From positions 182,082-246,081 of IMG/VR virus record IMGVR_UViG_3300042691_042003: a DNA stretch of 64,000 nucleotides, one strand, 5' to 3'. Numbering within the stretch: the stretch's first letter is position 1; each line of letters opens with the position of its first letter. Both the position numbers and the translations under genes were made by a program. This document shows positions 1,574-59,186 of the stretch, piece by piece. The notes beneath the pieces were generated by a model that was not told the DNA's origin, ran no database searches, and was given only the letters and a program-made list of their open reading frames with translations.

Positions 1574-1831
1574 ATGAAAAATCTATTTACTTACGAAGAA
1601 TTTTTAAACGAAGGGTCTACTAAGGTTGATGGAATCAATATAATTGATACCAAATACGTAGTAGCTCATAATTTCAAAAAACCCAGTGGAAAGGGCGTTT
1701 GGAAATGGTCTTTTTATTCAGACGGAGGAGATTCAGTAAAGACTCCTATTATGGATTATGAAAAGGCTAAAAAATGGGCAGCTGATTGGGCTAAGTTTAA
1801 AAAAGAACCTTGGGTTTATTTATTACCTTAA
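1574..1831 (+). CDS. Hypothetical protein with capsid-targeting-like N-terminus
   Basis: MKNLFTYEEFLNE N-terminus shared with other ORFs in window. Confidence 0.6.
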   Translation: MKNLFTYEEFLNEGSTKVDGINIIDTKYVVAHNFKKPSGKGVWKWSFYSDGGDSVKTPIMDYEKAKKWAADWAKFKKEPWVYLLP

Positions 1832-1846
1832 AAAAAAATTAATTTT

Positions 1847-2815
1847 ATGAAAAGAATTTTTTATCTCATTGGAGCTCTCTTCCTTTTTTCTTCTTGTCGC
1901 AGAGAAGACATGGAAATCAAAAACCCGGAAACCTCTCCATCGGTTGAAGTAAGACAATGTGCTTCTATGGATGTTCTTCAAAAACAACTACAAGAAGATC
2001 CTCAACTTCAATCTCGTATGGATGAAATCGAAACCAATCTTGAAAAGAATCAAAATCTTATGAAGATGGGTCGATTAGTAAATGGTGTTTATGAAATTCC
2101 TGTTTGGGTTAATGTTCTTTATAGAACATCTGCTGAAAATATTTCTCAAACTCAAATTCAATCTCAGATTGATGTACTTAACGAAGATTTCGGAGGAACA
2201 AATACAGATAATGTTTTAGTCCCTTCTACTTTTTCAACATTGAAAGCCGGAAATTGTAATATCCGTTTTGTTCTACAAGGTGTTACTCGTAAATCAACTA
2301 CGAAAACTTCTTGGAGGACTGATAATTCTATGAAGATTTCTTCTAAGGGAGGAATTAATCCTACTTCGCCTACGATATATTTAAATCTATGGGTCTGCAC
2401 TCTCGCTAATGGTATTCTAGGTTATGCTCAATTTCCAGGAGGATCTTCATCAACTGATGGTGTTGTTATTCTAAATACTGCCTTTGGTAGAACAGGAACT
2501 GCTACAGCTCCTTTCAATAAAGGTCGAACTGCTACTCATGAAGTTGGTCATTGGTTAAACCTTCGTCATATTTGGGGTGATGCTACTTGTGGTTCTGATT
2601 TAGTTAACGATACACCAACTCATAATACTGCTAATTACGGTTGTCCAGCAGCTGGTCATCGTTCAACTTGTACTGGAACTCCAATTGAAATGTGGATGAA
2701 TTACATGGATTACACTGACGATGCTTGTATGTATATGTTTTCTACTGGTCAAAAATCTAGAATGTTAGCTACTTTTGCTTCAGGAGGTGGAAGAACATCG
2801 TTTGCTCAACCTTAA
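1847..2815 (+). CDS. M43 (pappalysin/ulilysin-type) zinc metalloprotease, lipoprotein
   Basis: Lipobox LFSSC; prodomain Cys-switch RQCASM; HEVGHWLNLRHIWGD (HExxHxxxxxH); NYMDYTDD Met-turn. Confidence 0.9.
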   Translation: MKRIFYLIGALFLFSSCRREDMEIKNPETSPSVEVRQCASMDVLQKQLQEDPQLQSRMDEIETNLEKNQNLMKMGRLVNGVYEIPVWVNVLYRTSAENISQTQIQSQIDVLNEDFGGTNTDNVLVPSTFSTLKAGNCNIRFVLQGVTRKSTTKTSWRTDNSMKISSKGGINPTSPTIYLNLWVCTLANGILGYAQFPGGSSSTDGVVILNTAFGRTGTATAPFNKGRTATHEVGHWLNLRHIWGDATCGSDLVNDTPTHNTANYGCPAAGHRSTCTGTPIEMWMNYMDYTDDACMYMFSTGQKSRMLATFASGGGRTSFAQP

Positions 2816-2823
2816 TTATATTC

Positions 2824-3021
2824 ATGAAATTTTACACATATCGAGAATTTTTAAGAGAAACAGCATATAAAGAAGGAAGTAGAAAACCTACGGCTGAAGA
2901 AAGAAAAATGTGTAAATCACCTGAAGGATTTAATCAGATAAATCATTGTAAAGCTTTAGGACTTATTCCTAGAGCAGATGGAACTAAAAAAGTAAGTGCT
3001 AAATACGGAGGAGATGAGTAA
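2824..3021 (+). CDS. Small hypothetical protein with capsid-targeting-like N-terminus
   Basis: MKFYTYREFLRE. Confidence 0.55.
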   Translation: MKFYTYREFLRETAYKEGSRKPTAEERKMCKSPEGFNQINHCKALGLIPRADGTKKVSAKYGGDE

Positions 3022-3742
3022 TGAAAAAGATATACAAAGACTAGAAGATTCTTTAAGAGGAAAAAAGGTCTTACTAATAACGACCTCAAATCGTTGGTCA
3101 GGACATGATGAAAAACCTAAATCGTCTAGACTTGCTGAAGATCTGGCTAGTAGAATAGGTGCTACAATAATCGATGCTTCAAAATTGAAGATTTATCCTT
3201 GCGAAGGAAATGTTTCTACCGTTAACGGAAATAATTGCGGAACCGTAGATTCGGTTTTAAAAGATAAGACGAAGAATCCTACAGGTCATCATCGTTGCTG
3301 GGTTAATATTAATAATCCTGACGACGAACTTTGGAAAATAAGCAAAGAGATATTTGAAGCTGATTCGGTTATATTTTTCGCTTCAGTGAGATGGGGTCAA
3401 ACCAATTCTATATATCAGAAACTAATTGAACGCTTGAATTGGCTAGAGAATCGCTGGGCAACTTTGAATGAGAGTAATATATTATCTAATAAGGAGGCAG
3501 GCATTGTCCTAGTTGGCCACAATTGGAACGGAGTAGCTGTTTTAGAAACACAAAAGCAGGTTCTACAATTTTATGGATTTAAAGTTCCTACCGAGCTATC
3601 GTTTAATTGGCAATGGACTACCGATCCTTTTGATGAATCCGAAGAAGGATATATTCAAGATCCTAAAGATTTTAAAGAAGATTTCGATCTTGGATCTAAT
3701 GCATTGAAAGAATCATTCAAAAACTTCTTTAAAAGACAATGA
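3014..3742 (+). CDS. Flavodoxin-like / NAD(P)H-dependent FMN reductase family protein
   Basis: TTSNR...SSRLA, IYPCEGNVS...C, ADSVIFFASVRWGQTNSIYQKLIER; start reassigned to ATG 3014. Confidence 0.7.
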   Translation: MSNEKDIQRLEDSLRGKKVLLITTSNRWSGHDEKPKSSRLAEDLASRIGATIIDASKLKIYPCEGNVSTVNGNNCGTVDSVLKDKTKNPTGHHRCWVNINNPDDELWKISKEIFEADSVIFFASVRWGQTNSIYQKLIERLNWLENRWATLNESNILSNKEAGIVLVGHNWNGVAVLETQKQVLQFYGFKVPTELSFNWQWTTDPFDESEEGYIQDPKDFKEDFDLGSNALKESFKNFFKRQ

Positions 3743-4536
3743 AAAACTTAAAAACTTACGATAGCTGGTTAAACGAATCAACAGTTAATCCTATTGTTGA
3801 GGATCTACTTACTCGAGCAGAACCTACTATTCAACAGATGGTTAATAAATCTAGAGAGGCTTATGTAAAACAATACGAGCGTGAATGGACTAAATACGAT
3901 GAAACGATTACTAGATTAATCATAATCTCTAATATGGTTCGATCTTTTGAAATTTACACGAAACATAATGATAGACTCGTTAACTTTACAGTAAAAGGAT
4001 CTCCAAAAGGATCTATGGTTATCTCTTCACAAATTGATAGAGATGATGTACCTCATTATTTAGATACTGAGGTAATTTATGCAGGAGGTTATAATATACA
4101 GGCTCTTCATTATCGTTATATTACGAAAACTAATCTAACTAAAACTGGAGCTGATACTAAAACCAAAGAGATAGGAGAAAAAATCAAGAAGCTTTCTAAA
4201 CTAGAAAAGATCAATAAAGAAATCGAAGGTTATCAAGTCAGAATAAAGGATAATGAAGAGAATATTGCTAAAAATTCGGTTTTATCTGACGAAGAAATAA
4301 AGGATATTCTTCGAAAGGGAGAGTATGGTAGTACTATTGATACTACATGGGAGGATGTTGTTCGGAACAAAGGACATTACGATAGCAGAGAAGAATTTGA
4401 AACTTCTCAAAAGCAATACATCGCTGATAAGATAGTATTTTGGAAAAGGGTAAATATTGAATGGAAAATTGAGAATAATACAGCTCTCAAAAAGAATATT
4501 GACAAATTAAATAAGAAGTTAGAGACACTAATATGA
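3739..4536 (+). CDS. Hypothetical, probable internal head protein
   Basis: MKNLKTYDSWLNES N-terminus; coiled-coil C-terminus. Confidence 0.55.
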   Translation: MKNLKTYDSWLNESTVNPIVEDLLTRAEPTIQQMVNKSREAYVKQYEREWTKYDETITRLIIISNMVRSFEIYTKHNDRLVNFTVKGSPKGSMVISSQIDRDDVPHYLDTEVIYAGGYNIQALHYRYITKTNLTKTGADTKTKEIGEKIKKLSKLEKINKEIEGYQVRIKDNEENIAKNSVLSDEEIKDILRKGEYGSTIDTTWEDVVRNKGHYDSREEFETSQKQYIADKIVFWKRVNIEWKIENNTALKKNIDKLNKKLETLI

Positions 4537-5129
4537 AAAATTTAAAAACCTACGATAGCTGGTTGAATGAATCTTCAGGAGATTTACTTAAACCGAGAAG
4601 AGGAAAACCTTTACATTTCGATCATCGTAGATATCCAGAGCTAGCAGGTGAGCTATTCAATCTTATTACTATTGCATATTCGGAAATAGGAGGTCATGCT
4701 AAAATAAAATCTCCAGAAGATATATTCTCTGATCCTGATTGGAATTTCTGGGAAGGTACTGATATTCACGGATCTCAAGATTTTGATATTGTCATATTTG
4801 GACAGAAGACTAAATTTGGTGTTAAATTTTCCGGGGTAGGACATGATGGAGCAAAAGATTCTAAGAAAGAGTATCTAGACGATCTAGGATCAGATCTTAA
4901 GAATTTAGGTTATTACATCGAATCTTCTGGAAAATTTGCTGAGATTCTTATGAATAAGTACGGATGTCCTGTTATAGAAGACGAAGAAACTGTTGTTAAA
5001 GTTCTTGGTAAACAAGTTCAATGGATAGGTAAATCTTCAAATCCAGAACATACAGGTAATGGATGGTACATACGTAATATTGGAGGACATCCTCATGAAA
5101 AGATTTTAATAGGTCGACCAAAAAGTTAA
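4533..5129 (+). CDS. Hypothetical, probable internal head protein
   Basis: First 14 aa identical to previous ORF (MKNLKTYDSWLNES), remainder unrelated. Confidence 0.55.
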   Translation: MKNLKTYDSWLNESSGDLLKPRRGKPLHFDHRRYPELAGELFNLITIAYSEIGGHAKIKSPEDIFSDPDWNFWEGTDIHGSQDFDIVIFGQKTKFGVKFSGVGHDGAKDSKKEYLDDLGSDLKNLGYYIESSGKFAEILMNKYGCPVIEDEETVVKVLGKQVQWIGKSSNPEHTGNGWYIRNIGGHPHEKILIGRPKS

Positions 5130-5130
5130 A

Positions 5131-5185
5131 ATAAATTTTTTTCTTTACGATATTTGTTTTATATTAGCAATACAAAAATAAACAT
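5131..5185 (+). promoter_or_regulatory. Early-type promoter (short module)
   Basis: T-tract...TTTTATATTAGC core shared with repeated module. Confidence 0.55.
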
Positions 5186-6262
5186 ATGAAAGTAGCATTT
5201 TTTCACGGACTCGAATCTTCCCCAAAATCTGATAAGAATGATTCTCTTCGAAGCAGATTCGATTTTGTTTACGATCCTCCTATGTCTTATTCGGATCCCG
5301 GTCTATTTGAAAAAGTTCTTTCAGAGGTAAAGAAAAATAAAATCGATCTTCTTATAGGGTCATCTATGGGTGGTTGGTTCGCTTATTGCATTTCAACTCT
5401 GACAGGAATTCCCACACTCCTTTTTAATCCTGCAGTTCATAGTCGTCCTACGGAACCTAAAGTTAGGATAGGAAATAGAAAAGCAAAGCACACTCTAGTC
5501 TTAGGAATCAGTGATAAAGTTATTATTCCTATGCTTACTCAAAATTGGGTTGCAAAAGAAGGAATCGGTTCTTTTAAAATTTATTTTGAATCTAACGAAC
5601 ATAGGACCCCTATCGATATTTTTGATAAATGGTTAGATATTGAATCTAATAAGCTTAATGAAGAATGGTCAACCGAATCTCCTGGTAATTTACCTGATTG
5701 GTCATTTTTACCAGTTGAAGCTGTACAAACTCTCGTTCCTAATTTTCTAACTAAACGCCCTCCAGTTGGTAATCTCGTAATTGAAGATGATTCGGAAGTT
5801 GAAGATGTTAGAAGAGCACAAAGAAACCTTTCTGATGATGATATTCGTTTTATTAAAGATGCACATGATTCTCCTCCTCAGATTTTCTATCAATGGTTAG
5901 TTCTTAGAGGTGAAAGGCCAAAAATGTCCGATATTAAATCTTATTGGGAATCGAAGAAAAATCTTGATATGATTGGATTTCTAAAGAAAGCAACGAAGAG
6001 ACCGAGACCTTATCAGAAATACGATGATGTAAAAATTCCTACGGATATTGAAACTGAAGATTACTCATTTCCTTCAGGACATTCATATGGTGCTTATTTT
6101 ATAGCATCAAAACTTTCTCAAAAATATCCTCATCTCGTCGATGGACTTTTTTTACTTGCTGATCGAATTGCTAGAAGTCGTATACAAGCAGGAGTTCATT
6201 ATCCTTCTGATGTAGAAGCAGGTAAAATGCTTGCCCTAAAAATGTCACAAAAAGATTTCTAA
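5186..6262 (+). CDS. YqiA/YcfP-like alpha/beta esterase fused to PAP2 (vanadium haloperoxidase-like) phosphatase
   Basis: FFHGLESS, GSSMGG nucleophile elbow, NPAV; C-terminal KRPRP...FPSGHS...SRIQAGVHYPSDV. Confidence 0.85.
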   Translation: MKVAFFHGLESSPKSDKNDSLRSRFDFVYDPPMSYSDPGLFEKVLSEVKKNKIDLLIGSSMGGWFAYCISTLTGIPTLLFNPAVHSRPTEPKVRIGNRKAKHTLVLGISDKVIIPMLTQNWVAKEGIGSFKIYFESNEHRTPIDIFDKWLDIESNKLNEEWSTESPGNLPDWSFLPVEAVQTLVPNFLTKRPPVGNLVIEDDSEVEDVRRAQRNLSDDDIRFIKDAHDSPPQIFYQWLVLRGERPKMSDIKSYWESKKNLDMIGFLKKATKRPRPYQKYDDVKIPTDIETEDYSFPSGHSYGAYFIASKLSQKYPHLVDGLFLLADRIARSRIQAGVHYPSDVEAGKMLALKMSQKDF

Positions 6263-6263
6263 T

Positions 6264-6533
6264 ATGCCTTATCGTCCACAACAAACACTTACTTTCAAAA
6301 TTGAAAGAGTTAAGCCGGAGAAGAAATATGCAGGAGCTTATAAAAAGATATTCGATATTCTTAATAGAGAAAGGACCTTCTCAGAAGTATATGAAACCGA
6401 TGATAGTGTAGGATTCGTAAATGGAACCTATTGGTTAACTATTTCTGAAACTCCTGATTGGAATGATCTCGAAGCTATACTAAAAATTCCTAACGTTAGC
6501 ATAGCTAAGGAGACCGAGATTCCTAAGATGTAA
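6264..6533 (+). CDS. Hypothetical protein
   Basis: ORF track; last codons ATG TAA come from the repeat module. Confidence 0.55.
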   Translation: MPYRPQQTLTFKIERVKPEKKYAGAYKKIFDILNRERTFSEVYETDDSVGFVNGTYWLTISETPDWNDLEAILKIPNVSIAKETEIPKM

Positions 6534-6619
6534 TATCCGTGTACCTTTTTCAGAAAAATAGATTTTTTTCTGAAAGAAAAATGTATTATATTAGCTTTAT
6601 CAAATTAAATAATACATTT
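6528..6619 (+). promoter_or_regulatory. ~90 bp repeated promoter module, copy 1
   Basis: ATGTAATATCCGTGTACC-Tn...TGTATTATATTAGCTTTATCAAATT; internal inverted repeat TTTCAGAAAAA/TTTTTTCTGAAA. Confidence 0.8.
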
Positions 6620-6883
6620 ATGAACAACGTTTCAAAACTTAAGCCTGGCAAATACATGAAGTCCTATGCTGTACTTCATATGCTCTATCAAATCTATCAA
6701 AAACCAGATCTTGCGGAAACCATAGAAAAGGTTTGTCCAATTCATAAAGGTGAATTCGGTGAATATTTCTCAATCGAAGATCTAAAATCTGTAGATCCAG
6801 AATTTTATAAGAATTTCTTACATAACGAAATCGTTACACATATCATCTTATCCGAAGAAGAAAAACTTAAAGCTTGGATCTAA
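6620..6883 (+). CDS. Hypothetical protein
   Basis: Start reassigned to ATG 6620 downstream of promoter module. Confidence 0.55.
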   Translation: MNNVSKLKPGKYMKSYAVLHMLYQIYQKPDLAETIEKVCPIHKGEFGEYFSIEDLKSVDPEFYKNFLHNEIVTHIILSEEEKLKAWI

Positions 6884-6884
6884 T

Positions 6885-7124
6885 ATGCAAAACGAACTTT
6901 TAAAAGAAGCCTGCAAAAAAGCAGTTAATCATCAGATTCACCTCGGAATCCAAAATGGATGGAGCAAAGAAACTGGAAATCTTTATCAAGCTCTAAGAGA
7001 GCATGCGATTCCTAATTCGGGAATTTGTAGAGATCTCGGTCGTTGTTACTATGCTCATTCATTTGATGTACGAATCGAAGATAAAGTTTACGTAGTTACT
7101 TATTCTGTAGATTCTAGCGATTAA
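6885..7124 (+). CDS. Hypothetical protein
   Basis: ORF track, abutting neighbours. Confidence 0.5.
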   Translation: MQNELLKEACKKAVNHQIHLGIQNGWSKETGNLYQALREHAIPNSGICRDLGRCYYAHSFDVRIEDKVYVVTYSVDSSD

Positions 7125-7519
7125 TGCCGAAACTTCTTAGAAATCGAACAACGGCTCTTCTTGCTCTAGAATGGTGCAAGAAAAAATGGAAGAAAAGTCG
7201 TTATCATTCAGATTATCCAAAAATTCGAATTCTAAATCGATCAGCAAGAGATCTTTATGGTTGGTACGACGAGGAAAAGAATCTCATCACCATCAATATG
7301 CATCTTAATCGTAGAGTTATTGATATCATTGATACAGTAATTCACGAATACACTCATTACACACAAGATTGTAAGAATCTCTATGATAAGCTATGGGAAG
7401 AGAATGCTCATCGTCCTTATCGAGAACATCCACTCGAAAGAGAAGCTTATCGAAGACAAGAGAAATACGGTAAAATCTGTAAATCTGAAATTGAATCTTG
7501 GTATGTAATATCCGTGTAA
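7124..7519 (+). CDS. SprT-like / zincin metallopeptidase domain protein
   Basis: YGWY...ITINM...IIDTVIHEYTHYTQ (HExxH)...PLEREA. Confidence 0.7.
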   Translation: MPKLLRNRTTALLALEWCKKKWKKSRYHSDYPKIRILNRSARDLYGWYDEEKNLITINMHLNRRVIDIIDTVIHEYTHYTQDCKNLYDKLWEENAHRPYREHPLEREAYRRQEKYGKICKSEIESWYVISV

Positions 7520-7594
7520 TAAAATTGTTAAAAAAGAATTTTTTCTTTCAAGTATTTATATTATATTAGCTATATCAAATTACAATAAAAACTT
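7503..7594 (+). promoter_or_regulatory. ~90 bp repeated promoter module, copy 2
   Basis: ATGTAATATCCGTGTAA...ATTATATTAGCTATATCAAATT. Confidence 0.8.
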
Positions 7595-7687
7595 ATGATA
7601 CTTTTAATCGCAACAGAACTTACACTTCTTTCAACGTTTGGTTCACTCTACATCATCGATCGTCTTAAAAGAAACAACGGCAAGTAA
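7595..7687 (+). CDS. 30-aa hydrophobic peptide (not in ORF track)
   Basis: MILLIATELTLLSTFGSLYIIDRLKRNNGK*, at the same distance from the module as other first genes. Confidence 0.5.
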   Translation: MILLIATELTLLSTFGSLYIIDRLKRNNGK

Positions 7688-7697
7688 AATCAATCTT

Positions 7698-7925
7698 ATG
7701 AAACAACAAGAAAAAATCTGGATTCTCTCTCTTCCTACTGAAATGAAGCTTATGATTCTTCAAGAAGCATATGTTCAAAACTTCGCTCATTTTATGCAAC
7801 TTTCTAAGTTGTTCCTTGATACACCAATCACTGATGGTGGACTCGCTACCGAAACAATCGATTCTGTCCTAACTAAGGTTCGTACAAATCCTTCTTCTTT
7901 CGTAAAATCTCAACAACCTATCTAA
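7698..7925 (+). CDS. Hypothetical protein
   Basis: Start reassigned to ATG 7698 (MKQQEKIW). Confidence 0.5.
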   Translation: MKQQEKIWILSLPTEMKLMILQEAYVQNFAHFMQLSKLFLDTPITDGGLATETIDSVLTKVRTNPSSFVKSQQPI

Positions 7926-7929
7926 TCCG

Positions 7930-8238: not shown

Positions 8239-8245
8239 ATAACTT

Positions 8246-9020: not shown

Positions 9021-9117
9021 AACTAACTGGTCAAAAAAGTCATATAACCATTACAAGGGTTTCAAGGTAAAAGGAATACAGTAGTCACAGTTCAGTGATA
9101 AAATAAAATTAAAGAAT

Positions 9118-10005: not shown

Positions 10006-13596
<3,591 letters not shown>

Positions 13597-27959: not shown

Positions 27960-29270
27960 ATGAAGAATCATCTATCAATAAGTCCTATAGACGGCAGATA
28001 TCACGACCAAACTCAATTTTTACACAAGTACTTTTCTGAATATGCTTTAGTTAAAAACCGAGTAAGAGTAGAAGTTGAATATCTCATTAAGCTCGTAGAT
28101 AAGATTCTTCCTAATCGATTAACTAATGTAGACAGGAATTATCTAAGACTTATATATAAAAATTTTAGTGAAGAAGATTTTCAAAGAATCAAGAGAATCG
28201 AAAACGAAATTAAACACGACGTAAAAGCAGTAGAAATATTTCTAAGAGAAAGAGTTTTCGAAGATCTTAAATGTTATGTTCATTTCGGTTTAACTTCACA
28301 AGATGTAAATAGTATTTCTTATTCTCTGGCTTTAAGAGAATGGTATAGTGAAAGTGGATTTACAGAAATCTACAATTTGAAAGAGCAAATCGAATCTCTT
28401 TCTGAACGTTGGTGGAATATTCCAATGGTTTCTAGAACTCATGGTCAGCTTGCTTCTCCTACTCGTTTAGGTAAAGAAATGAAAGTTTTCTCTTATCGAT
28501 TAGAACGAAAAGAAGAAATCATATTCACATTTGCAAAGTTCGGTGGAGCCGTTGGAAATGCAAATGCTCACTATGCAGCTTTTCCTAATGTCGATTGGGA
28601 AGAATTCTTCGAGCAATTTGTAAATTCATTCAATCTAGAAAGATCCGAATGGACAACACAAATCGATTCATATGATAGCTATGCAGAAAGATTCAATCGT
28701 CTTTCAGAAATTTGCACTATCCTTCTCGACTTTTCTAGAGACATTTGGCAGTATATTTCTTTAGATTATCTAAAGCTTAGAGTCGAAGAACATGAGGTCG
28801 GATCTTCAACGATGCCCCATAAAGTAAATCCAATTAACTTTGAAAATGCAGAAGGAAATCTAGGAATTGCAATTGCTCTGTTCCGACATTTTTCCGAAAA
28901 GCTTCCTGTAAGTAGACTACAAAGAGATCTATCGGATTCAACAGTTCTACGAAATATAGGAGTTCCTATCGCACATATGCAAATAGCTATCAATCAACTT
29001 TCTGAAGGACTTGAAAAGCTAGAAGCTAATGAAGAGAAGATTCGTTTAGATCTGTATTCTGATTGGTCGATCATTACTGAAGGTATTCAAACAATTCTTA
29101 GAATTCACGGATTTGATGATGCTTATGATCGATTGAAGACTTTCTCTAGAGGCAAGAGTCCTCTTTCTCTTTATGATGTTCATAAATTTATTGATTCTTT
29201 AGAAATTCCAGAGCATATAAATAAAGAACTTAAATTAATTACTCCTGAAAATTATATCGGTCGTAATTAA
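27960..29270 (+). CDS. purB: Adenylosuccinate lyase
   Basis: ISPIDGRY, HDVKAVE, VHFGLTSQD, SRTHGQLASPT, GSSTMPHKVNPINFENAEGN, SRLQRDLSDSTVLRN. Confidence 0.95.
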   Translation: MKNHLSISPIDGRYHDQTQFLHKYFSEYALVKNRVRVEVEYLIKLVDKILPNRLTNVDRNYLRLIYKNFSEEDFQRIKRIENEIKHDVKAVEIFLRERVFEDLKCYVHFGLTSQDVNSISYSLALREWYSESGFTEIYNLKEQIESLSERWWNIPMVSRTHGQLASPTRLGKEMKVFSYRLERKEEIIFTFAKFGGAVGNANAHYAAFPNVDWEEFFEQFVNSFNLERSEWTTQIDSYDSYAERFNRLSEICTILLDFSRDIWQYISLDYLKLRVEEHEVGSSTMPHKVNPINFENAEGNLGIAIALFRHFSEKLPVSRLQRDLSDSTVLRNIGVPIAHMQIAINQLSEGLEKLEANEEKIRLDLYSDWSIITEGIQTILRIHGFDDAYDRLKTFSRGKSPLSLYDVHKFIDSLEIPEHINKELKLITPENYIGRN

Positions 29271-49599: not shown

Positions 49600-49944
49600 G
49601 TGAATACATTTAAGAAATTTTACGAATTTATCAACGAATCATTAGCATTTTTAACTCTCAATAAAACCATGAAAAACGAATTCATGAATAATATTGAGCT
49701 AAAAAACGATTTCGAAAATGCAAAAAGACAATTTTATATGAACGGCAATTTCCTTCTTACTCATATAGAAGGAGATAAATTCGAGTTAAGAACTAGATCT
49801 AATGTTCAATCCGAAGACTTAGACGGGATTATCGATTCTCATGTAAATACTACTACGGAAAGAATGAAATTTCGTAGAATAGGAAAACCGAAGACCGATA
49901 AAATTAAAGATAAAATTTGGATGGTTAAGGCAAAAATCGATTAA
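49600..49944 (+). CDS. Hypothetical with capsid-targeting-like N-terminus
   Basis: MNTFKKFYEFINES (GTG start). Confidence 0.55.
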   Translation: MNTFKKFYEFINESLAFLTLNKTMKNEFMNNIELKNDFENAKRQFYMNGNFLLTHIEGDKFELRTRSNVQSEDLDGIIDSHVNTTTERMKFRRIGKPKTDKIKDKIWMVKAKID

Positions 49945-49972: not shown

Positions 49973-50665
49973 ATGGAAAAATACTCTACTTTCGAAGAAG
50001 CCTTCTATTACATAAATAAACAAATCATAAATTGGCCTACATTCATAACAACATCTCGTATAGGTGATGTTCATGAAATATGTTCTCTTACATATACAGT
50101 CGAAGATCTCGGTTCTTATAAATTTAAGGATGAATCTTTAGGAAGACTTGATTATGATTATGCTGATACTTTTTATCGTTGGATGATTGACGGTTGTACC
50201 GATTCTACAGAAATTCTAGAAAAATATCCTAATACTTCTAGATTCATGGAAAAACCAAAATCTCCTGATCTACCTTCTAATTTTAACACCTTTTACGGTC
50301 CTAGAATTTTACAACAACTCCCTCATATCATTAAAGAATTAACTGCTAATCCTGATTCTCGTCGAGCAGTTATTTCTATTCTTGATAAAGATGATTTACT
50401 CCTCCTTGATAAAGATGAAACCTTAGAATTTCCTTGTTGTGATTCTGCAACATTCTTTATTAGAGGAGGAAAATTACATGTCCATCTTCATATGCGTTCT
50501 CAGAATATGGGTCAAGTACTTAAGCTTGACATGTATTTATGGGGTAGATTTACATGTGAATTAGCTGAAAACCTAAATATTGAAACCGGAAATTTTTTCT
50601 CTTCTGTTGTTTCTGCTCATGTGTTTACTAAAGATTTTGATTACCTTTCCAATTTTATAGAATGA
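49973..50665 (+). CDS. Thymidylate synthase homolog, dCMP hydroxymethylase-type
   Basis: YGPR, DSRRAVI, EFPCC catalytic Cys, MRSQNMGQVLKLD (Asp at pyrimidine-specificity position), SAHVF. Confidence 0.75.
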   Translation: MEKYSTFEEAFYYINKQIINWPTFITTSRIGDVHEICSLTYTVEDLGSYKFKDESLGRLDYDYADTFYRWMIDGCTDSTEILEKYPNTSRFMEKPKSPDLPSNFNTFYGPRILQQLPHIIKELTANPDSRRAVISILDKDDLLLLDKDETLEFPCCDSATFFIRGGKLHVHLHMRSQNMGQVLKLDMYLWGRFTCELAENLNIETGNFFSSVVSAHVFTKDFDYLSNFIE

Positions 50666-51960
50666 AAAAACCTCTAAACGTTTTTTATGCAGTACAAGTG
50701 TCTAATTTCACAACTAATGGAGATAAGTCCAAATGGTTGATTCGTAATGATGCTTGTATGAATATCTGTATCGGTATTGTCTCTTCAATACTTACCGAAT
50801 ATCCAAAAGATTTCCGATTTATTATTAAAGTTCCTCCTGTAGAAGATTGTGCAGATATTGATTCTCATAAGGATCTATTCGATGAAAAATATCTAGATAG
50901 AATTGAATTCTATGAAGATTTTATTCCTATTTCCCCTGTAATTAGTCGTTTTCATTTTGATATGAACACACATAAAGTTTTTGGTTCTAAAAAACTTGCT
51001 AATGTTGATGTTATGATTAACGATGAAAATACACATACTAAAAGCTGGAGAATATTCTTCGAAAATATCATTGGTAAAAGGATTCCAATGGTTTCGACTA
51101 ATTACTTTATGGATTCACCAATTTCTCCAAAATCGGATCCTAAGGTAAGATATTATGAAAGACAAATGGAATCACTTATATCTTCGGATATGTTTTCGTA
51201 TCCTGTAACTGCTGCTCTTAATGAAGCTCTCGAAGCTTATAATTTTCTATTTAAAGATGGAACGATCCTAGGAATTCCCACTGTTTGGAATATTGGTGCT
51301 TCTTTCGAAGAAATTAATAAGAAAAAAGTAACTAAGTCTCCAGGAAAGATTAAAATTTATTTTGGTAATCGAATTACCGATTCTGCTAATCGATACACTA
51401 ATTGGCATCTATTTGCTGAAGCTATCGGTAAACTTTCGGAAAGGATTGATCCTTCTCGCTTCACTGCAACGATTCTTAATCCTACAAAGAAAATTACTCC
51501 TGAACAACTCGACGAAATTTCAACTCTTTCTCGTGGATGTGTCGAAGTAGTTCCTAATTACAGTGATTTCAGTCGAGAAGATTATATCAATTTTATTAAC
51601 GAAGCACATATTTCTTGCAATCTATTTACTAATGAAGTACATGGTGGATTAACTCACGTAGAAGCTATGATGGCAGGTTGTATTCTTGTTGCTCCTAACG
51701 TTAATGATTATCTTTATAAATACGAAGATTCAGGAAAACTTTCAGATTATCCCTTTCTAATTGACACATATAATAAAAAGCTAGATATGGAATCTTTTGT
51801 AAGTAAACTCGAACTAGCCGTTAATACTGCTCAAAACAAGCAATCAATGGAAAAATATTCAGAAATGAATCGTGAACTTGCTTATAAATATGCATCATAT
51901 GAAATGTCTTCTCATATCATTGCAAAAGATCTTAAGAAACTAGCAAAGCTTTATAAATGA
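50662..51960 (+). CDS. GT-B fold glycosyltransferase (divergent)
   Basis: C-terminal FSREDYINFI...CNLF..E..GG...EAMMAGCILVAPN...Y. Confidence 0.7.
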   Translation: MKKPLNVFYAVQVSNFTTNGDKSKWLIRNDACMNICIGIVSSILTEYPKDFRFIIKVPPVEDCADIDSHKDLFDEKYLDRIEFYEDFIPISPVISRFHFDMNTHKVFGSKKLANVDVMINDENTHTKSWRIFFENIIGKRIPMVSTNYFMDSPISPKSDPKVRYYERQMESLISSDMFSYPVTAALNEALEAYNFLFKDGTILGIPTVWNIGASFEEINKKKVTKSPGKIKIYFGNRITDSANRYTNWHLFAEAIGKLSERIDPSRFTATILNPTKKITPEQLDEISTLSRGCVEVVPNYSDFSREDYINFINEAHISCNLFTNEVHGGLTHVEAMMAGCILVAPNVNDYLYKYEDSGKLSDYPFLIDTYNKKLDMESFVSKLELAVNTAQNKQSMEKYSEMNRELAYKYASYEMSSHIIAKDLKKLAKLYK

Positions 51961-52985
51961 ATATACTTGTAACAGGATCTGCAGGTTTCCTCGGTAATTT
52001 TGTCTGTAATTTCTTTCATGAAAAAGGACATAAGATTATAGGAATTGATAATTTATCTAGAAAAGGATCTCATCTTAATGCACAAAAACAGAAAGAAAAC
52101 TTTCTGTTTTTCTTTGGTGATATTTCTAATCCTTCTGATTTAAAATTTACTGAAGATCTAGATATTGATTGGATTATTGATTGTGCAGCTGAACCTTCTG
52201 TTCTTGCAGGAACCGACGGTCAATCTAAAGGTCTAATAGATAATAATCTCATTTCGACTATTAATCTTCTTGAAATTTGTGCCAAGAAAAAATGTGGATT
52301 TACTCTTATGAGCACTAGTAGAGTTTATTCGGTTAAACAACTTTCTAGTATTGAGATAATTAAGACTCCTACTAAATTCTTTTCTACCGTTCAAGTTGAT
52401 GAAGATTTTTCTACAAAACCTCCTGTTTCTCTTTATGGATCTACAAAGCTAACATCCGAATTATTAGCTTTAGAATATTCTAGTCTTTATCAATTCCCTG
52501 TATTTATTAATCGATGTGGTGTTATTGCAGGTGCAGGACAATTTGGTAAAATCGATCAAGGCGTTTTTTCGTATTGGATTTATTCTTGGATAAGAAAACA
52601 ACCTCTTAAATATTTTGGATTCGATGGAACCGGTCGACAAAGTCGAGATGTAATTCACCCTAAAGATATTTGTACAGTTTTAGAAAAACAAATTCAATTC
52701 GGTAAAATTGAAGAAGATCCTATTTATTGTTTGGGTGGTGGACATCAAAATTGTATGTCACTCTTAGAATTATCCCAATGGTGTAAAGAAAATATATCTT
52801 CTGATTATGAACCCGAATCAGTTCCAATCGACAGACCTTTTGATATTCCTGTATTTGTAATGGATACGAAAAAAGCTGAAAGGAGATGGAAATTTAAAAT
52901 TACGGTTTCAATAAAAGAAATTCTAAAAGAAATAAGAGATCATGCTAAAAATAACCCTGATTTTCTTGATTACCTTTATTCTTAA
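51957..52985 (+). CDS. NAD-dependent epimerase/dehydratase, CDP-paratose 2-epimerase (RfbE)-like
   Basis: TGSAGFLG, DNLSRKGS, AAEPSV, STSRVY, YGSTK, GQFGKIDQG, GRQSRD. Confidence 0.85.
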   Translation: MNILVTGSAGFLGNFVCNFFHEKGHKIIGIDNLSRKGSHLNAQKQKENFLFFFGDISNPSDLKFTEDLDIDWIIDCAAEPSVLAGTDGQSKGLIDNNLISTINLLEICAKKKCGFTLMSTSRVYSVKQLSSIEIIKTPTKFFSTVQVDEDFSTKPPVSLYGSTKLTSELLALEYSSLYQFPVFINRCGVIAGAGQFGKIDQGVFSYWIYSWIRKQPLKYFGFDGTGRQSRDVIHPKDICTVLEKQIQFGKIEEDPIYCLGGGHQNCMSLLELSQWCKENISSDYEPESVPIDRPFDIPVFVMDTKKAERRWKFKITVSIKEILKEIRDHAKNNPDFLDYLYS

Positions 52986-53002
52986 TTTACATATAATTAT
53001 AT

Positions 53003-53575
53003 ATGGCAAATCTAATTATACTCGAAGGTTTATCTAGAACCGGCAAATCGACCATTTGTAAATCTCTATCAGAAAAATTTAAACTACGAAATATTTCAAT
53101 AAAAAATAAAATGCCGGAAAACGTAAGTCTTCCGGATTTTTATCATGGAATTCATGTTGTTATGAATGAAATTTATCGTGAATTTCCTGAAGAAACTTTT
53201 ATTCTTGATCGTTCATTTCTTTCAGAATTGGTTTATTCAAAATTCTTCAATAGAACAACTCATCAAAAAGAAGATTCTATTATTTCTGATTTACTTTTCG
53301 ATAATAATTTTATTCTTGTTTATCTTAAGAATACTCATTCCGATTATCAAAACCGAGGACCTAAAGATAGAATTATTTATTCAAAAGAAGATTATGAAAA
53401 ACAAACTGATTTATTCGATTGGTTCTTTTCTACATATAAACAAAATATAGATACAGAATCTTGGCAAAATCGATTTATCGAATTAAATACATCGATAAAT
53501 TCTATTGAAGAATGCATCGAAAATATAGAACAAACAATGTCAAAAAATAATTTTTTAAAACAAATCGAAATATGA
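53003..53575 (+). CDS. Deoxynucleoside monophosphate kinase (thymidylate kinase-like)
   Basis: LIILEGLSRTGKST, ILDRSFLSELVY. Confidence 0.85.
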   Translation: MANLIILEGLSRTGKSTICKSLSEKFKLRNISIKNKMPENVSLPDFYHGIHVVMNEIYREFPEETFILDRSFLSELVYSKFFNRTTHQKEDSIISDLLFDNNFILVYLKNTHSDYQNRGPKDRIIYSKEDYEKQTDLFDWFFSTYKQNIDTESWQNRFIELNTSINSIEECIENIEQTMSKNNFLKQIEI

Positions 53576-54702
53576 AACAAAAAGTAGCAATTGTTACAGG
53601 ATCAAATGGACTTATCGGCTCTCAATCTGTTAAATTTCTTATTGAAAGGAATTATTTCGTTATCGGTATTGATAATGATATGCGATCTTATTTCTTCGGA
53701 CCTGAGGCTTCTACGAAGGAAAGTGAAGAAAAAATGGTAGAAGAATTTGGAAAATCTTTTAAGTCTTTTAACGTCGATATACGTGATGTTGAATCTCTTG
53801 AAGAAATTTTCGAAGCTTATGAAACCCCAGAATTCGATGTAGATCTTATTATCCATACTGCGGCACAACCTTCACATGATTGGGCTGCTAAAGAACCTCT
53901 TACTGATTTTACGGTAAATGCTCTAGGAACGGTTAATATGCTTGAATTAACTCGTCTTTATTTCCCTAAAGCTTCTTTTATTTTTACTTCAACAAACAAG
54001 GTTTACGGTGATACTCCCAACCGTTTGAATCTTATCGAAGAAGAAACTCGATATGACGCAGTTTCTAATCTCTCTCGTCGACCTATCGAAGTAGATGAAA
54101 CTATGTCCATCGATCATACCAAACATTCAATTTTTGGTGCTTCTAAGGTTGCAGCCGATGTTATGGTTCAAGAATATGGACGTTATTTTGGAATGAATAC
54201 CGTTGTTTTTCGAGGTGGATGTCTTACTGGTCCTAATCATGCAGGTGCCGAACTTCATGGATTTCTTTCTTATTTGATTAAATGTATTGTTAATCGTAAA
54301 CATTATAGGATCTTTGGATATAAAGGAAAACAAGTACGAGATAATATTCATTCATGGGATCTTGTAAATATGTTCTGGCATTATCATCTGAATCCTATCC
54401 CAGGTGCTGTCTATAATGCAGGTGGTGGAAGAGAAAATAGTACTTCTATTCTCGAAGCAATAGATACAGTTAATCGAATCCTTAAAGAAAAATTCCCTCA
54501 TAATTACGAAGATTGGAAAGATTATGAAATTCTAGATCAAAATCGTATAGGTGACCATCAATGGTATATTTCCGATCTTACTCAATTTAAGAAAGATTAT
54601 CCAGAGTGGCCTGGAATTACTATTTCTCTTGAAGAAACAATCAATCAAATTGTAGAATTTGAACTTCAAAAAAACGTAGAAACCGTTAATGAAAACAATT
54701 GA
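53572..54702 (+). CDS. NAD-dependent epimerase/dehydratase, RfbE-like (second)
   Basis: TGSNGLIG, HTAAQPSHDWA, TSTNKVYGD, FGASK, GKQVRDNIH. Confidence 0.88.
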   Translation: MKQKVAIVTGSNGLIGSQSVKFLIERNYFVIGIDNDMRSYFFGPEASTKESEEKMVEEFGKSFKSFNVDIRDVESLEEIFEAYETPEFDVDLIIHTAAQPSHDWAAKEPLTDFTVNALGTVNMLELTRLYFPKASFIFTSTNKVYGDTPNRLNLIEEETRYDAVSNLSRRPIEVDETMSIDHTKHSIFGASKVAADVMVQEYGRYFGMNTVVFRGGCLTGPNHAGAELHGFLSYLIKCIVNRKHYRIFGYKGKQVRDNIHSWDLVNMFWHYHLNPIPGAVYNAGGGRENSTSILEAIDTVNRILKEKFPHNYEDWKDYEILDQNRIGDHQWYISDLTQFKKDYPEWPGITISLEETINQIVEFELQKNVETVNENN

Positions 54703-55807
54703 TATAATTCAATTTACTCCTATTATTGGAGGTGAAACTACATTGACTAAAACCATGTCCGATTTTCTGTCGGACATGGGTTATTCTGTTAGAGTTATCC
54801 ATCCTTCGAAAAGTGGAAAGTGTATGAAGGATTGGTGCACTTTCGAAAGACAAAATTTTGTAAAGATTTCAGATTTTTCTGAATTTGTAAAAGATACAGA
54901 TATTCTTTTCTTTATTAATTCAATCCATCTTAAGAAACATAAAAAAGTAGAGGATCGTAATGAAGCTTTTGAGCAAGCTATTCCTATTTTTAGTTTCGAT
55001 AGTAAAAAAGTAATTTTCTATGAGCACGGAAGACATAGTAGTGACCTTTATGATTACCCTTCTATCTTTTCTATTTTATCAGAAAGAGGAAATAGAATCG
55101 TAGTTTTCACAAATACAAGAGATGTAATTCCTTATTATGAAAAGTTAGGTTATAACGCCTTTTTGATTAGACAACCTTTAGATCCTAAAAATTATCCTGA
55201 AATAAAGAGAGAAAAATCTGAAAAAGTTAAGCTTTCTTTTAATAGCAGATATACCTCAAATAAGAGACCTCAAAATATCCTTCCTTTCTTCAATAAATAT
55301 TTAGGAAAAGAAGAACCTTTTGAATTACATTTCAGAGGTAATGTTAGAGATAATGTTTCGGTTTGGTATAATCTATTTCATTACTTCGATGATCCAAAAA
55401 TTATTATGAATGGATATTTTGAACATTTCCATGAGATTTATAATAATATTGATTATTGTATTTATGGAGGATATACTACAAAATCCGAAAAAGGAAAGAT
55501 GGAATACTCTATGCTAGAACCTTTCTTTTATGGAATTCCTCTTATTGTAGAAAAAGAAGTAATTCAATATTTTAAATACGAAGAATATGGAATTTCTAAA
55601 GAAGATTTTCTAAAATCAGTTATTGTTTTGACTGAAGAAAATCTTGATAAGATAATTAAAGGAGAATTTGATTCTTCTTCTTTCGTAAAAAATGCAAAAT
55701 CTATTGTCGATGATTTTCTTCCTGAATCTATAAAAAGAAGGCTGGAAATAGGTCTAAATGGATTTGATTTACCTATAAAACCGAAAGAGATTTATACACT
55801 TTTTTAA
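54689..55807 (+). CDS. Putative GT-B glycosyltransferase
   Basis: GGETT N-terminal loop; FNSRYTSNKRP; E.G..EYSMLEPFFYGIPLIV. Confidence 0.65.
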   Translation: MKTIDIIQFTPIIGGETTLTKTMSDFLSDMGYSVRVIHPSKSGKCMKDWCTFERQNFVKISDFSEFVKDTDILFFINSIHLKKHKKVEDRNEAFEQAIPIFSFDSKKVIFYEHGRHSSDLYDYPSIFSILSERGNRIVVFTNTRDVIPYYEKLGYNAFLIRQPLDPKNYPEIKREKSEKVKLSFNSRYTSNKRPQNILPFFNKYLGKEEPFELHFRGNVRDNVSVWYNLFHYFDDPKIIMNGYFEHFHEIYNNIDYCIYGGYTTKSEKGKMEYSMLEPFFYGIPLIVEKEVIQYFKYEEYGISKEDFLKSVIVLTEENLDKIIKGEFDSSSFVKNAKSIVDDFLPESIKRRLEIGLNGFDLPIKPKEIYTLF

Positions 55808-55829
55808 GATAAATAAAAGAAAATCAGAA

Positions 55830-56732
55830 ATGTTTTTTAAGAAATTCGAAGAATTTGTTAATGAAAATGAAGAAAGCTATTCAATATTTTCATTTAATGA
55901 AGATGGTATTGTTGAAGCAAGTATGCCATTTCCCGTAGATGATAAAAAGGCAGATCATAAAATAGCTATCTACACATCAACCTACAACATCGGAGAGAAC
56001 ACTAGAGGAAGAGGTAATTATATTACTTATGAAAAGATGCTAGGTGACCTGATTGATTCCCTGAATGCTCAGAAGTATAAAAATTGGAAACTCTTTATTG
56101 TAGGGGATTGTTTTCAACCTGAGGAAGATCTTACAAAAATCCTTTCTGATAAGCTAGATAAGAAACAATATACATTTCATAATCTTTCTGAACCCGGTGA
56201 AAGAGGAAAAATCGATCCTCAATATCTAAGAAATTCAGGGGGAACAAAAGCGAGAAATAAAGCTATCTCACTTGCTAAATCTGAAGGATTCGAATATTTT
56301 GCAGCTATCGATCATGATGATGTTTGGAAGCCTGATCATCTTGAAAGTATGATGCAAGCTTTTCAGCAAGATCCAGATATTTCATTCGGATATCATAGAG
56401 CTTCTAGAGCTAGAGTAAAAGGAGGTAAATCAGGAGTTTATTATTGGGGTGCTGAAGGGAAAACACCTACACTTTTTTATGATGATGTTCCTGATAAAAT
56501 TATTGAAGCTCCTCATTCAGGTATCGTATGGCATGGTCCTTCATGTAAATGGCCTCAATATCGTACAGTTCCTCAAATGAGATCTGAAGCTCCTAAGAGA
56601 AATCGAATTATGGGAGCCGATGAGGATTTCATCAGACAAGCTACTGTTGGTTTAAGAGAAAATAAGAAGAAAGCCGTTTATGTTCCGAAATTAATAGTTA
56701 GACTTCGAAATGCCAAGGGTAAACTTCCTTAA
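55830..56732 (+). CDS. GT-A (GT2-like) glycosyltransferase with capsid-targeting-like N-terminus
   Basis: MFFKKFEEFVNE; YTSTYN, SLNAQKYKNWKLFIVGD, GGTKARNKAI, IDHDDVW (DxD), ADEDF. Confidence 0.8.
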   Translation: MFFKKFEEFVNENEESYSIFSFNEDGIVEASMPFPVDDKKADHKIAIYTSTYNIGENTRGRGNYITYEKMLGDLIDSLNAQKYKNWKLFIVGDCFQPEEDLTKILSDKLDKKQYTFHNLSEPGERGKIDPQYLRNSGGTKARNKAISLAKSEGFEYFAAIDHDDVWKPDHLESMMQAFQQDPDISFGYHRASRARVKGGKSGVYYWGAEGKTPTLFYDDVPDKIIEAPHSGIVWHGPSCKWPQYRTVPQMRSEAPKRNRIMGADEDFIRQATVGLRENKKKAVYVPKLIVRLRNAKGKLP

Positions 56733-56753
56733 TTTTTAACAAATTTAATCTTC

Positions 56754-56783
56754 AAGGCTGAAATGTGAATTTCAGCCTTTTTT
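56754..56783 (+). terminator. Rho-independent terminator
   Basis: AAGGCTGAAAT-GTGA-ATTTCAGCCTT + T tract. Confidence 0.85.
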
Positions 56784-56810
56784 ATTACATATTATTTAAT
56801 ATTATTAAAT

Positions 56811-57443
56811 ATGAATATTTTCGTACTCCACAAAGATCCGGAAATAGCAGCAATGATGCATTGTGAAAGGCATATTCTTAAAATGCTTATCGAACATACT
56901 CAAATGCTTGCTACAGCCTATTACAGCACAATTGGAATTTCTCGAAAAAAGGAATTTCAAGGAAATGAAGAAAAAATTTCCGAACTTTTTAGAGGATGGC
57001 CTAGAAAAGATGAAAATGGAAATGATTGGCCTTATTCAGTAACTCATGTAAATCATCCTTGCACAATTTGGACTAGAGAATCTCTTTCAAATTTTAATTG
57101 GCTACTTGATTGCACAAAAGCTATGTGTAGAGAATATACTTATCGATACGGTAAAAAACATTCTATTGAATCCATTATAGATTGGATGTATCTGAATCCT
57201 CCTAAACTAAAGGATATTGGTCAAACACCTTTTGCTCAAGCTTTACCAGATTGCTTTAAAGATTCTGATCCAATAAAAGCTTATCGTCTTTATTATGCTT
57301 TCAAAACAACATATATGAAAGTTAATTGGAAATTAGAAGAAAGGATCCCTCAATGGTGGAATCGAGACTTAATTGAAGAATCAATTGATTTATATAGTCG
57401 ATCTAATCCTGATTGGTCTCCTAAAAAACTTGTACTTGCTTAA
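56811..57443 (+). CDS. Pyrimidine dimer DNA glycosylase family (DenV-related) protein
   Basis: MNIFVL..DP..AA..HC..H..KM..E..QML; HVNHPCTIW.RES..NFNWL; YT.RYGK.H; TPFAQALP. Confidence 0.8.
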   Translation: MNIFVLHKDPEIAAMMHCERHILKMLIEHTQMLATAYYSTIGISRKKEFQGNEEKISELFRGWPRKDENGNDWPYSVTHVNHPCTIWTRESLSNFNWLLDCTKAMCREYTYRYGKKHSIESIIDWMYLNPPKLKDIGQTPFAQALPDCFKDSDPIKAYRLYYAFKTTYMKVNWKLEERIPQWWNRDLIEESIDLYSRSNPDWSPKKLVLA

Positions 57444-57459
57444 TACATATAATTTATAT

Positions 57460-57849
57460 ATGGCTATTCTACAACAAGAATTTCAATACGATCAATATCG
57501 AATGCTTATAGCATGTATCATGTTAAATCAAACAAGCAATAAGAATGTTCGACAAGTAATTTATACATTTTTCGATCGATGGCCTACACCTCAATCCGTT
57601 ATCGAAGCCGATCCTTCTGAAATCCGAGAACATATACGTCCTTTAGGTTTCTATAACATCAGAACTAATCGAATTATCAGATTTACTCAAGATTATTTAA
57701 CGAAGAAATTTAATCGAGCTTCTGAATTATATGGCATCGGAAAATATGCCGATGATTCATATGAAATTTTTATTCGAGGAAATCTAAACGTAAATCCAAC
57801 CGATAAAATCCTTCGTAGATATTTAAACGGTGAATTCATAGATCAATAA
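57460..57849 (+). CDS. HhH-GPD DNA glycosylase, MBD4-like
   Basis: MLIACIMLNQT, FF.RWPTP, PLGFYNIR, ELYGIGKYADDSYEIF; start reassigned to 57460. Confidence 0.8.
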   Translation: MAILQQEFQYDQYRMLIACIMLNQTSNKNVRQVIYTFFDRWPTPQSVIEADPSEIREHIRPLGFYNIRTNRIIRFTQDYLTKKFNRASELYGIGKYADDSYEIFIRGNLNVNPTDKILRRYLNGEFIDQ

Positions 57850-57876
57850 GTGATATATATAAAAAAATAGTTTAAA

Positions 57877-58272
57877 ATGCAAAAATTTACTGAATTTTTG
57901 GTTGAACATAAAGCTTCATTAGAAAATAAGAAGAAAGCAGAAGACGCTCATCGTTTTAATGAACTTTATGAAGCAAAGCTAAAAGAATTTGGAGTAGATT
58001 CTCCTGTTGAATTAAATGAAGAACAATCTAAAGAATTTTTCGAGTATCTAAAAGATCTTAAGAATTCTGCTTCAAAAATGCCTGTTAATGAAAAAGATGT
58101 TACTGATGAGAAATCTTTTCGTGAATACGCTTTAGAAGTTTTAAAGAAAGCACATCCCGATGATTTTGATCAGAAAATTGCTGATAAAGTTATTAGTGAT
58201 CTTGCTGCTAAAGTAAAAGATGATGATTGGGGTGCTGCTGTAGGAAGACTAACCTCCGGTTTAGGAAAATAA
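57877..58272 (+). CDS. Probable prohead core/internal protein
   Basis: MQKFTEFLVE and internal FNE, LNE, VNE putative protease sites; acidic/charged. Confidence 0.55.
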   Translation: MQKFTEFLVEHKASLENKKKAEDAHRFNELYEAKLKEFGVDSPVELNEEQSKEFFEYLKDLKNSASKMPVNEKDVTDEKSFREYALEVLKKAHPDDFDQKIADKVISDLAAKVKDDDWGAAVGRLTSGLGK

Positions 58273-58282
58273 AAAAACGAAA

Positions 58283-58660
58283 ATGAAAAATTTAAAAACT
58301 TTTAGTGAATTCGTTAACGAATCAGCTCTTAACGAAAAAATGATTTCTGGCTCTATAGTAAAACAATTTGGAGACGTTTTAGGAAGTAGAGACTTAGCAA
58401 ATGTAGATCTTGAAATTGCTAAATTCTTAGGAGTTGGATCTAAAATGGCAGATGTAGCTCAATTTGACGAATATAGCGGAGAAGATTCTCCAAAAGCCGA
58501 TAAAATATATAATTATTTAGGATCTAATTTTAAGGCTACCGATAGCAAAACGGTTGATGATTATGAATTGTCATATGATTCTAAATTAAATGTAGTTAGA
58601 GCTACCGATGCAGGTGATGGTTTTGTTTCATATTACGTTGTAGCTACTTCTAATTTTTAA
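58283..58660 (+). CDS. Probable internal head protein
   Basis: MKNLKTFSEFVNESALNE. Confidence 0.6.
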   Translation: MKNLKTFSEFVNESALNEKMISGSIVKQFGDVLGSRDLANVDLEIAKFLGVGSKMADVAQFDEYSGEDSPKADKIYNYLGSNFKATDSKTVDDYELSYDSKLNVVRATDAGDGFVSYYVVATSNF

Positions 58661-58673
58661 AAAAAAATTAAAA

Positions 58674-59186
58674 ATGAAAAATTTAAAAACTTTTAATGAA
58701 TTCGTTAATGAATCTAAATTGAACGAAGCTTTTGCTACATTAGAAGGAGATGATGTACTTTCTTCAACTTATAAAGATTATGAATCATCAGAAGATGAAG
58801 ATTTAGATCTTAAGGTTATGAAAAAAGGTTTCGAATCTATCGCTAAATTATTAGGAGGTAATATGAATAATGTTTCTTCTACAATGGAAGAAGGTGATTA
58901 TGAATTCAGTCGTTCATTGAATGTAGGACTTGATAAAAGATTTAATAATGCAGATCCTAATATTGAAAAGGTAGGACAAGTTAATATTAATTCCCCTTTT
59001 GATTCTTCTAATTCTTCTACTCCAGTTACTTGCTATCTTATAAAAGATGCTAATATTAAAGTAGCTACTTGGAATTATGGAGATGATTTCGCAACATTCG
59101 ATCACGTTGCTTATCTTACTAAAGATGCTAAAGCTCTTCTTAAATGGGTAAATTCTAATTTATCCGATGATGATATGCAATACTAA
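58674..59186 (+). CDS. Probable internal head protein
   Basis: MKNLKTFNEFVNESKLNE. Confidence 0.6.
   Translation: MKNLKTFNEFVNESKLNEAFATLEGDDVLSSTYKDYESSEDEDLDLKVMKKGFESIAKLLGGNMNNVSSTMEEGDYEFSRSLNVGLDKRFNNADPNIEKVGQVNINSPFDSSNSSTPVTCYLIKDANIKVATWNYGDDFATFDHVAYLTKDAKALLKWVNSNLSDDDMQY

Follow-up and report, generated by a model that had tools for sequence, protein, structure and literature searches.

Proteins injected with a phage genome act before phage gene expression, and those of T4 include restriction inhibitors and host-modifying enzymes. Such proteins are normally found only through virion proteomics of cultured phages. In T4, a short N-terminal peptide, the capsid targeting sequence (CTS; MKTYQEFIAE, PMC8442874), brings internal proteins onto the scaffolding core and is then removed by gp21 (PMC5694885, PMC3012670). 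Its carriers (IPI, IPII, IPIII and Alt) are otherwise unrelated, and its last residues are [LIV]-x-E, with a small residue next. In phiKZ-like giant phages (phiKZ, 201phi2-1 and SPN3US), which use an S80 protease, many head-internal proteins likewise undergo cleavage after Glu, and the propeptides presumably bring them to the prohead (PMC5694885). Here we describe a similar N-terminal tag in an uncultured virus, IMG/VR record IMGVR_UViG_3300042691_042003. We analysed a stretch of 64,000 nucleotides (the window, bases 182,082-246,081 of the record), in which nine genes carry the tag, together with the rest of the genome, which brings the count to 31. The shared N-terminus is probably a propeptide for capsid targeting and cleavage, of the kind known from T4, whose use has grown greatly, to dozens of cargos, in a clade of jumbo phages that has not been cultured. 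We found no description of this tag, its repertoire or sequences such as FEEFLNE in the literature; a 2026 paper that names the CTS does so solely as background on T4 IPI.

The shared N-terminal tag and the head genes

The source genome is a viral contig of 246,081 bp with direct terminal repeats and a GC content of 31.4%. About 308 of its 326 gene calls lie on the + strand, and a megablast search with the window gave no match among deposited phages. The original prediction, which covered the window only, listed about nine near-identical N-termini between positions 1574 and 59186, and all nine were found at the places and with the residues it gave. It also suggested building a motif and scanning the genome with it. 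We built a profile from 31 clear cases and ran it over every stop-to-stop frame of the genome. The profile gives 31 matches at 13.7 bits or more, every one of them N-terminal on a + strand open reading frame (ORF), against noise of at most 8.5 bits, and there are no strong internal matches in these frames. Exactly nine of the 31 lie in the window, so that the predicted number stands there and is too low for the genome as a whole. Two weaker N-terminal candidates at 10.5-11 bits bring the total to 31-33. A loose regular expression run on the six-frame translation also returns about 30 matches, 5-7 residues behind the start codon of long + strand ORFs, and a de novo comparison of the first 18 residues with the interiors of proteins yields this motif again as an enriched pattern (p~1e-18).

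The consensus is M-K-N-[LI]-x-[ST]-[FY]-[ED]-E-F-[LIV]-N-E, with S, N, G or A as the next residue. It is a short acidic peptide in which aromatic and aliphatic residues recur at regular intervals, and individual tags are 10-14 residues long. Tagged proteins number 31 of about 310, or roughly 10% of the proteome. Eight consecutive tagged genes form an array at genome 92.0-95.5 kb. Another five (73653, 76387, 76861, 77778 and 78620; four clear tags and one weaker candidate) lie upstream of the head genes at genome 73.6-78.6 kb. Tagged ORFs with the same distinctive starts as 73653 and 78620 occur in several other IMG/VR loci. By analogy with T4 gp67 and gp68, these genes look like conserved prohead-core components, unlike the variable cargo.

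The resemblance to the T4 internal-protein targeting sequence, asserted in the original prediction, could be measured directly. A profile made from the tags of this phage alone was run on the T4 six-frame translation, giving 2,519 matches. The top three are the N-termini of ipII (12.7 bits), ipIII (12.3 bits) and gp61.1 (12.2 bits), and the next match scores 8.6 bits; ipI ranks 12th. In sequence, T4 MKTYQEFIAE compares with MK..TYEEFLNE here. The third T4 match, gp61.1 (NC_000866, 18966-19130), is a hypothetical protein of 54 residues that starts MKTFKEFIKE and may, judging from this start, be an unrecognised CTS-bearing protein of T4.

The predicted gp21-type ending, (I/L/V)-X-E, is borne out at every tag: P3 is L, I or V and P1 is Glu in 31/31, and P1' is S, N, G or A in 27/31. 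The genome also encodes a gp21-type protease. Three adjacent head genes at genome 80.3-85.5 kb specify a gp20-type portal (PF07230, Portal_T4, E=8e-71), an ORF with a protease domain of the T4 gp21 family (PF03420, Peptidase_S77, E=3.6e-12) and a Gp23-family major capsid protein (PF07068, E=8.4e-36), so that homologues of gp21, gp23 and gp20 are present as in T4. The protease ORF (genome 81957-83801) has 614 residues, with the S77 domain at its start (about residues 1-165), which has a weaker match to Peptidase_S80 as well. The remaining ~450 residues are rich in IEYTK/IQY-type repeats and have a scaffold-like look.

Sites like those that end the tags recur within this ORF, which has [LIV]-N-E at four places, with S or G as the next residue each time. 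The first, R-V-N-E↓S-F-G (↓, predicted cut), coincides with the end of the protease domain and does not vary in 12/12 aligned tag-rich relatives. At the junction of two deep-branching members the sequence is S-L-N-E↓S. A second [LIV]-N-E occurs within 12 residues after the tag in 6/31 proteins of this genome (0.42 expected, p=6e-6) and in 27/176 from IMG/VR relatives (2.4 expected, p=2e-19), with S, A, N or G at P1'. Redundant propeptide sites are known for substrates of the T4 and giant-phage proteases (PMC5694885). The capsid protein itself starts M-x-x-L-I-N-E in every tag-rich member, and outgroups lack this start; T4 gp24 starts MAKINE.

Several features distinguish this system from that of T4. 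Tagged genes number 31-47 per genome in this clade, compared with a handful in T4. The tag is three residues longer than the T4 CTS and almost always has Asn at P2. Its cargo includes recognisable enzymes, and its protease is fused to the scaffold-like region. The lineage is a distant clade of uncultured low-GC jumbo phages that probably infect Bacteroidota and are known from sequence alone. Membership of the propeptide class of phiKZ and SPN3US can be set aside: those propeptides are mostly longer than 100 residues, heterogeneous and have A, S or G at P3 (PMC5694885), whereas the tags here are short, uniform and have L, I or V at that position.

Distribution of the tag and its interpretation

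A pattern back-translated from the tag found at least 119 stretches in IMG/VR, of which 80 loci, each of at most 15 kb, were fetched. These 80 contain 208 tagged N-termini and come from low-GC contigs of up to 640 kb. Among 25 larger tag-bearing contigs, S77 and Gp23 are both present in 5/5 of at least 90% completeness and in 9/9 of at least 170 kb, with two S77 matches among those contigs lying below the Pfam cut-off. The contigs without these markers are fragments of at most 54% completeness. In every clade member checked, the S77 domain is fused to a scaffold-like region as it is here, in an ORF of 577-819 residues.

The nearest relative of the capsid protein is in LR756500.1, an uncultured phage of 462 kb (55% identity), in which about 28 proteins carry a dialect of the tag, MKYIKEYEEF[LI][NL]E. 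A closer relative of 294 kb, G003 (74% identity in the major capsid protein), has 47 tags. Counts of the core motif on the coding strand range from 5 to 39 per genome across the clade; T4 has 5. Gp23-type capsid proteins homologous to that of this phage (31-40% identity) are also found in Prevotella Lak megaphages (40%) and in the Tenacibaculum phages pT24 and PTm1 (about 31-33% by BLASTP). Lak-A1 has 7 core-motif matches against 2 in a reversed control, close to background, and KVP40, Aeh1, Syn9 and HTVC008M are at control level. The tag is absent from pT24 and PTm1, unlike this phage: no shared N-terminal tag was found in them by profile (maxima of 7.2 and 6.2 bits) or de novo. Both have a protease-scaffold fusion with an [IV]-x-E↓S junction, as here, annotated in PTm1 and present as a homologous ORF of 527 residues in pT24. 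The junction sites read V-M-E↓S in pT24 and I-S-E↓S in PTm1.

We infer docking to the core, cleavage, packaging and retention in the head, injection, and the roles of the cargo. During prohead assembly, the tag would dock its carrier onto the scaffolding core, which probably consists of the C-terminal region fused to the S77 protease and the conserved tagged core proteins encoded beside the head genes. Once the gp23-type shell had closed, the gp21-family serine protease would make its cut between [LIV]-N-E and a small residue. The tag would then depart, and the mature protein would remain in the head with the DNA and enter the host at infection. T4 IPI and Alt make an anti-defence or host-takeover role for the cargo, as the original prediction proposed, plausible by analogy.

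Should the tag function as it does in T4, sequence alone would suffice to predict which proteins an entire uncultured jumbo clade packages, and a profile scan of metagenomes would list thousands of phage-delivered proteins. This would amount to a large and mostly uncharacterised pool of candidate early-acting effectors in anti-defence or takeover. It would also mean that the pairing of CTS and protease is conserved far beyond the T-even phages, and would add another targeting peptide, distinct from that of T4, with which foreign proteins could be loaded into phage heads. The broader proposal is that T4 and the jumbo clade share the tag as a capsid address of ancient origin and conserved sequence, and that the clade has expanded it into an "injectome" that can be read from each genome, a few dozen proteins in size (31-33 here and 47 in G003) and with enzymes among them; we believe and doubt this in about equal measure.

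Several points weigh against a capsid-targeting role. The protease family is also present in the phages pT24 and PTm1, which lack the tag; head assembly as such thus does not require the tag. The cargo includes ordinary-looking enzymes (a family-2 glycosyltransferase and an adenylyl/cytidylyltransferase) that would be expected to be cytoplasmic rather than injected. At the position of the T4 gp23 propeptide cut, the clade capsid protein conserves neither [LIV]-N-E nor a Glu, which removes the classic substrate as a cross-check on the specificity of the protease. The phage collection yielded no cultured phage that belongs to the tag-rich clade. Finally, the gene calls are heuristic.

The tag might instead be a propeptide only, a timed switch for activation or inactivation that is cut by a prohead or host protease without capsid loading, with the cargo acting in the producing cell. 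The [LIV]-N-E site is itself the best-conserved and redundantly repeated element, and some of the cargo enzymes would plausibly work during replication. Conservation extends 7-12 residues upstream of the site, however, and includes [FY]-x-E-F, which exceeds what a cleavage site needs. This upstream part matches the CTS of T4, itself sufficient for packaging (PMC5694885, PMC8442874). Moreover, T4 gp21 cuts its substrates inside the completed prohead (PMC5694885), so that by this precedent the substrates would be located there. We regard a switch of this kind as unlikely.

A handle for some target other than the prohead, such as a chaperone, a replication or assembly compartment, a membrane or a degradation system, seems to us similarly improbable. 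The prohead is a destination that we infer for the tagged proteins, and packaging about a tenth of the proteome is a large share. The best T4 matches, however, are internal head proteins, and the tag co-occurs with the S77 protease and has the site found at its junction. More than 50 proteins have been reported in the heads of giant phages (PMC7411985, PMC10052503). A membrane or export route by way of a Sec, Tat or lipoprotein signal was rejected, since the tag, read by eye, is acidic overall, with three Glu/Asp, and lacks a hydrophobic stretch.

Cargo bodies and selection on the tag

Capsid targeting by a portable address would place the tag on unrelated proteins, and the bodies are indeed diverse. 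BLASTP after removal of the tag sorts the 31 tagged proteins into 30 unrelated families, joining a single pair (genome genes 183655 and 95430), in agreement with the predicted "otherwise unrelated" bodies. Most tagged proteins have no match in Pfam, PHROGs or NCBIfam; the few with domains in these collections include a family-2 glycosyltransferase (GT2), an adenylyl/cytidylyltransferase, a KTSC protein and a DUF5856/Dps-like protein. The mature cargos are small (median 118 residues) and tend to be basic, with a median isoelectric point of 8.4 compared with 6.1 for other proteins (p=0.055).

The set of bodies also turns over between relatives. G003 has homologues of 17/32 cargo bodies, and 13 of the 17 are tagged. 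LR756500.1 has homologues of 2/32, both untagged there. The tag is kept while the shared bodies fall from 17/32 to 2/32, which points to a constant address with exchangeable cargo. The cargo set of T-even internal proteins likewise varies between relatives (PMC3012670). The tag thus proves portable in the sense originally predicted: it is found on unrelated bodies, and tagged and untagged homologues of the same cargo exist. An untagged case in G003, at ~122.6 kb, is homologous to genome gene 150639, the tagged nucleotidyltransferase. It lacks the N-terminal tag and lies behind another domain, and the linker (…SFIDKLNENEVFEA…) contains tag-like cleavage motifs.

Common descent of the tagged proteins, as diverged paralogues of which the N-terminal domain alone is still recognisable, is very improbable. 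The one pair with homologous bodies is what such a family would predict, but the 30 separate BLAST families, the lengths of 65 to 305 residues, the differing Pfam domains and the two cargos with untagged homologues in a relative all contradict it, and we rejected it on the BLASTP comparison of bodies (1 pair among 31).

Selection acts on the tag peptide. With gene starts aligned on the motif, the DNA 5' of the start codon is unconserved beyond a general A-richness, and upstream k-mers of tagged and other genes show regions that are generically A-rich throughout. Most of the information lies in codon positions 1 and 2, position 3 varies freely among synonyms, and conservation runs to codon 13, with the Glu as its precise end. 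Two neighbouring genes, at 3739 and 4533, share an identical 14-residue start that is encoded with five synonymous differences. A nucleic-acid feature, either a mobile cassette of promoter, ribosome-binding site and start by which genes are shuffled or an mRNA element that enhances the initiation of translation, would fit the A-rich gene starts and the frequent AAA and AAT at the second and third codons, but is essentially refuted by this codon pattern and the unconserved upstream DNA.

Tagged genes and other features of the window

All nine tagged genes of the window are on the + strand. The gene at 1574..1831 encodes 85 residues, with the tag MKNLFTYEEFLNE at 1574-1612 (25.3 bits). Its body (genome gene 183655) is similar only to that of genome gene 95430, which is tagged too, and has no Pfam or PHROG match. 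The gene at 2824..3021 (65 residues) carries MKFYTYREFLRE at 2824-2859 (17.1 bits), with R rather than N at P2, and also has no Pfam or PHROG match. Next come the two genes with the identical tag MKNLKTYDSWLNE. One, at 3739..4536 (265 residues; tag at 3739-3777, 23.6 bits), matches no family, and its body is unrelated to that of the other, at 4533..5129 (198 residues; tag at 4533-4571, 24.4 bits). The latter is a conserved clade cargo with 295 homologues; the tag pattern is kept in 112/120 examined (56-81% identity), its letters drifting, and the others have near-variants. An AlphaFold2 model of this protein has a predicted local distance difference test score of 73 and gives weak GNAT-like fold matches (best E = 0.058).

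The gene at 49600..49944 (114 residues) has a GTG start and the tag (M)NTFKKFYEFINE at 49600-49638 (19.8 bits), and its tagged homologue in G003 is 61% identical. The tagged family-2 glycosyltransferase is encoded at 55830..56732 (300 residues), with the tag MFFKKFEEFVNE at 55830-55865 (13.7 bits) and the Pfam domain Glycos_transf_2 over residues 68-187. A possible second site, IVE↓A, lies near residue 28. In homologues of this protein the first Glu is often gone and a conserved [IV]-x-E↓A stays near residue 27; the homologue in LR756500.1 is untagged. Three tagged genes follow. The first, at 57877..58272 (131 residues), has a short tag, MQKFTEFLVE, at 57877-57906 (14.6 bits), which equals the T4 CTS in length; its tagged homologue in G003 is 62% identical. 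The second, at 58283..58660 (125 residues), has MKNLKTFSEFVNE at 58283-58321 (26.8 bits), followed by a second site (ALNE). The third, at 58674..59186 (170 residues), has MKNLKTFNEFVNE at 58674-58712 (23.8 bits), also followed by a second site (KLNE), and has a tagged homologue in G003.

Other genes of the window touch on the host and on the virion. The protein encoded at 37-1473 combines an F5/8 type C domain with a weak C-terminal sorting tail of the type IX secretion system (E = 8e-5), both below the Pfam cut-offs. This tail and the nearest capsid relatives together suggest a Bacteroidota host. The next such gene, at 1847-2815, encodes an M43 metallopeptidase with an N-terminus that looks, by eye, like a lipoprotein leader. 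Proteins with collagen-like G-x-T repeats are encoded at 10617-13406, 60914-62467 and 62500-63999. The last two have an N-terminus of ~90 residues in common and, judging from their sequences, are probably fibre proteins; the latter continues past the contig end.

An island at 49973-55807 lies directly upstream of the tagged glycosyltransferase gene. Its first gene is thymidylate-synthase-like by Pfam, and the translations include ORFs that resemble, by eye, a glycosyltransferase, an NAD-epimerase/dehydratase and a kinase. The one of these by-eye ORFs that was scanned, at 50662-51957, has no Pfam match. The island may encode a sugar or DNA-modification pathway. Finally, a full-length adenylosuccinate lyase (Lyase_1 and ASL_C), an auxiliary gene of purine metabolism, is encoded at 27960-29270.

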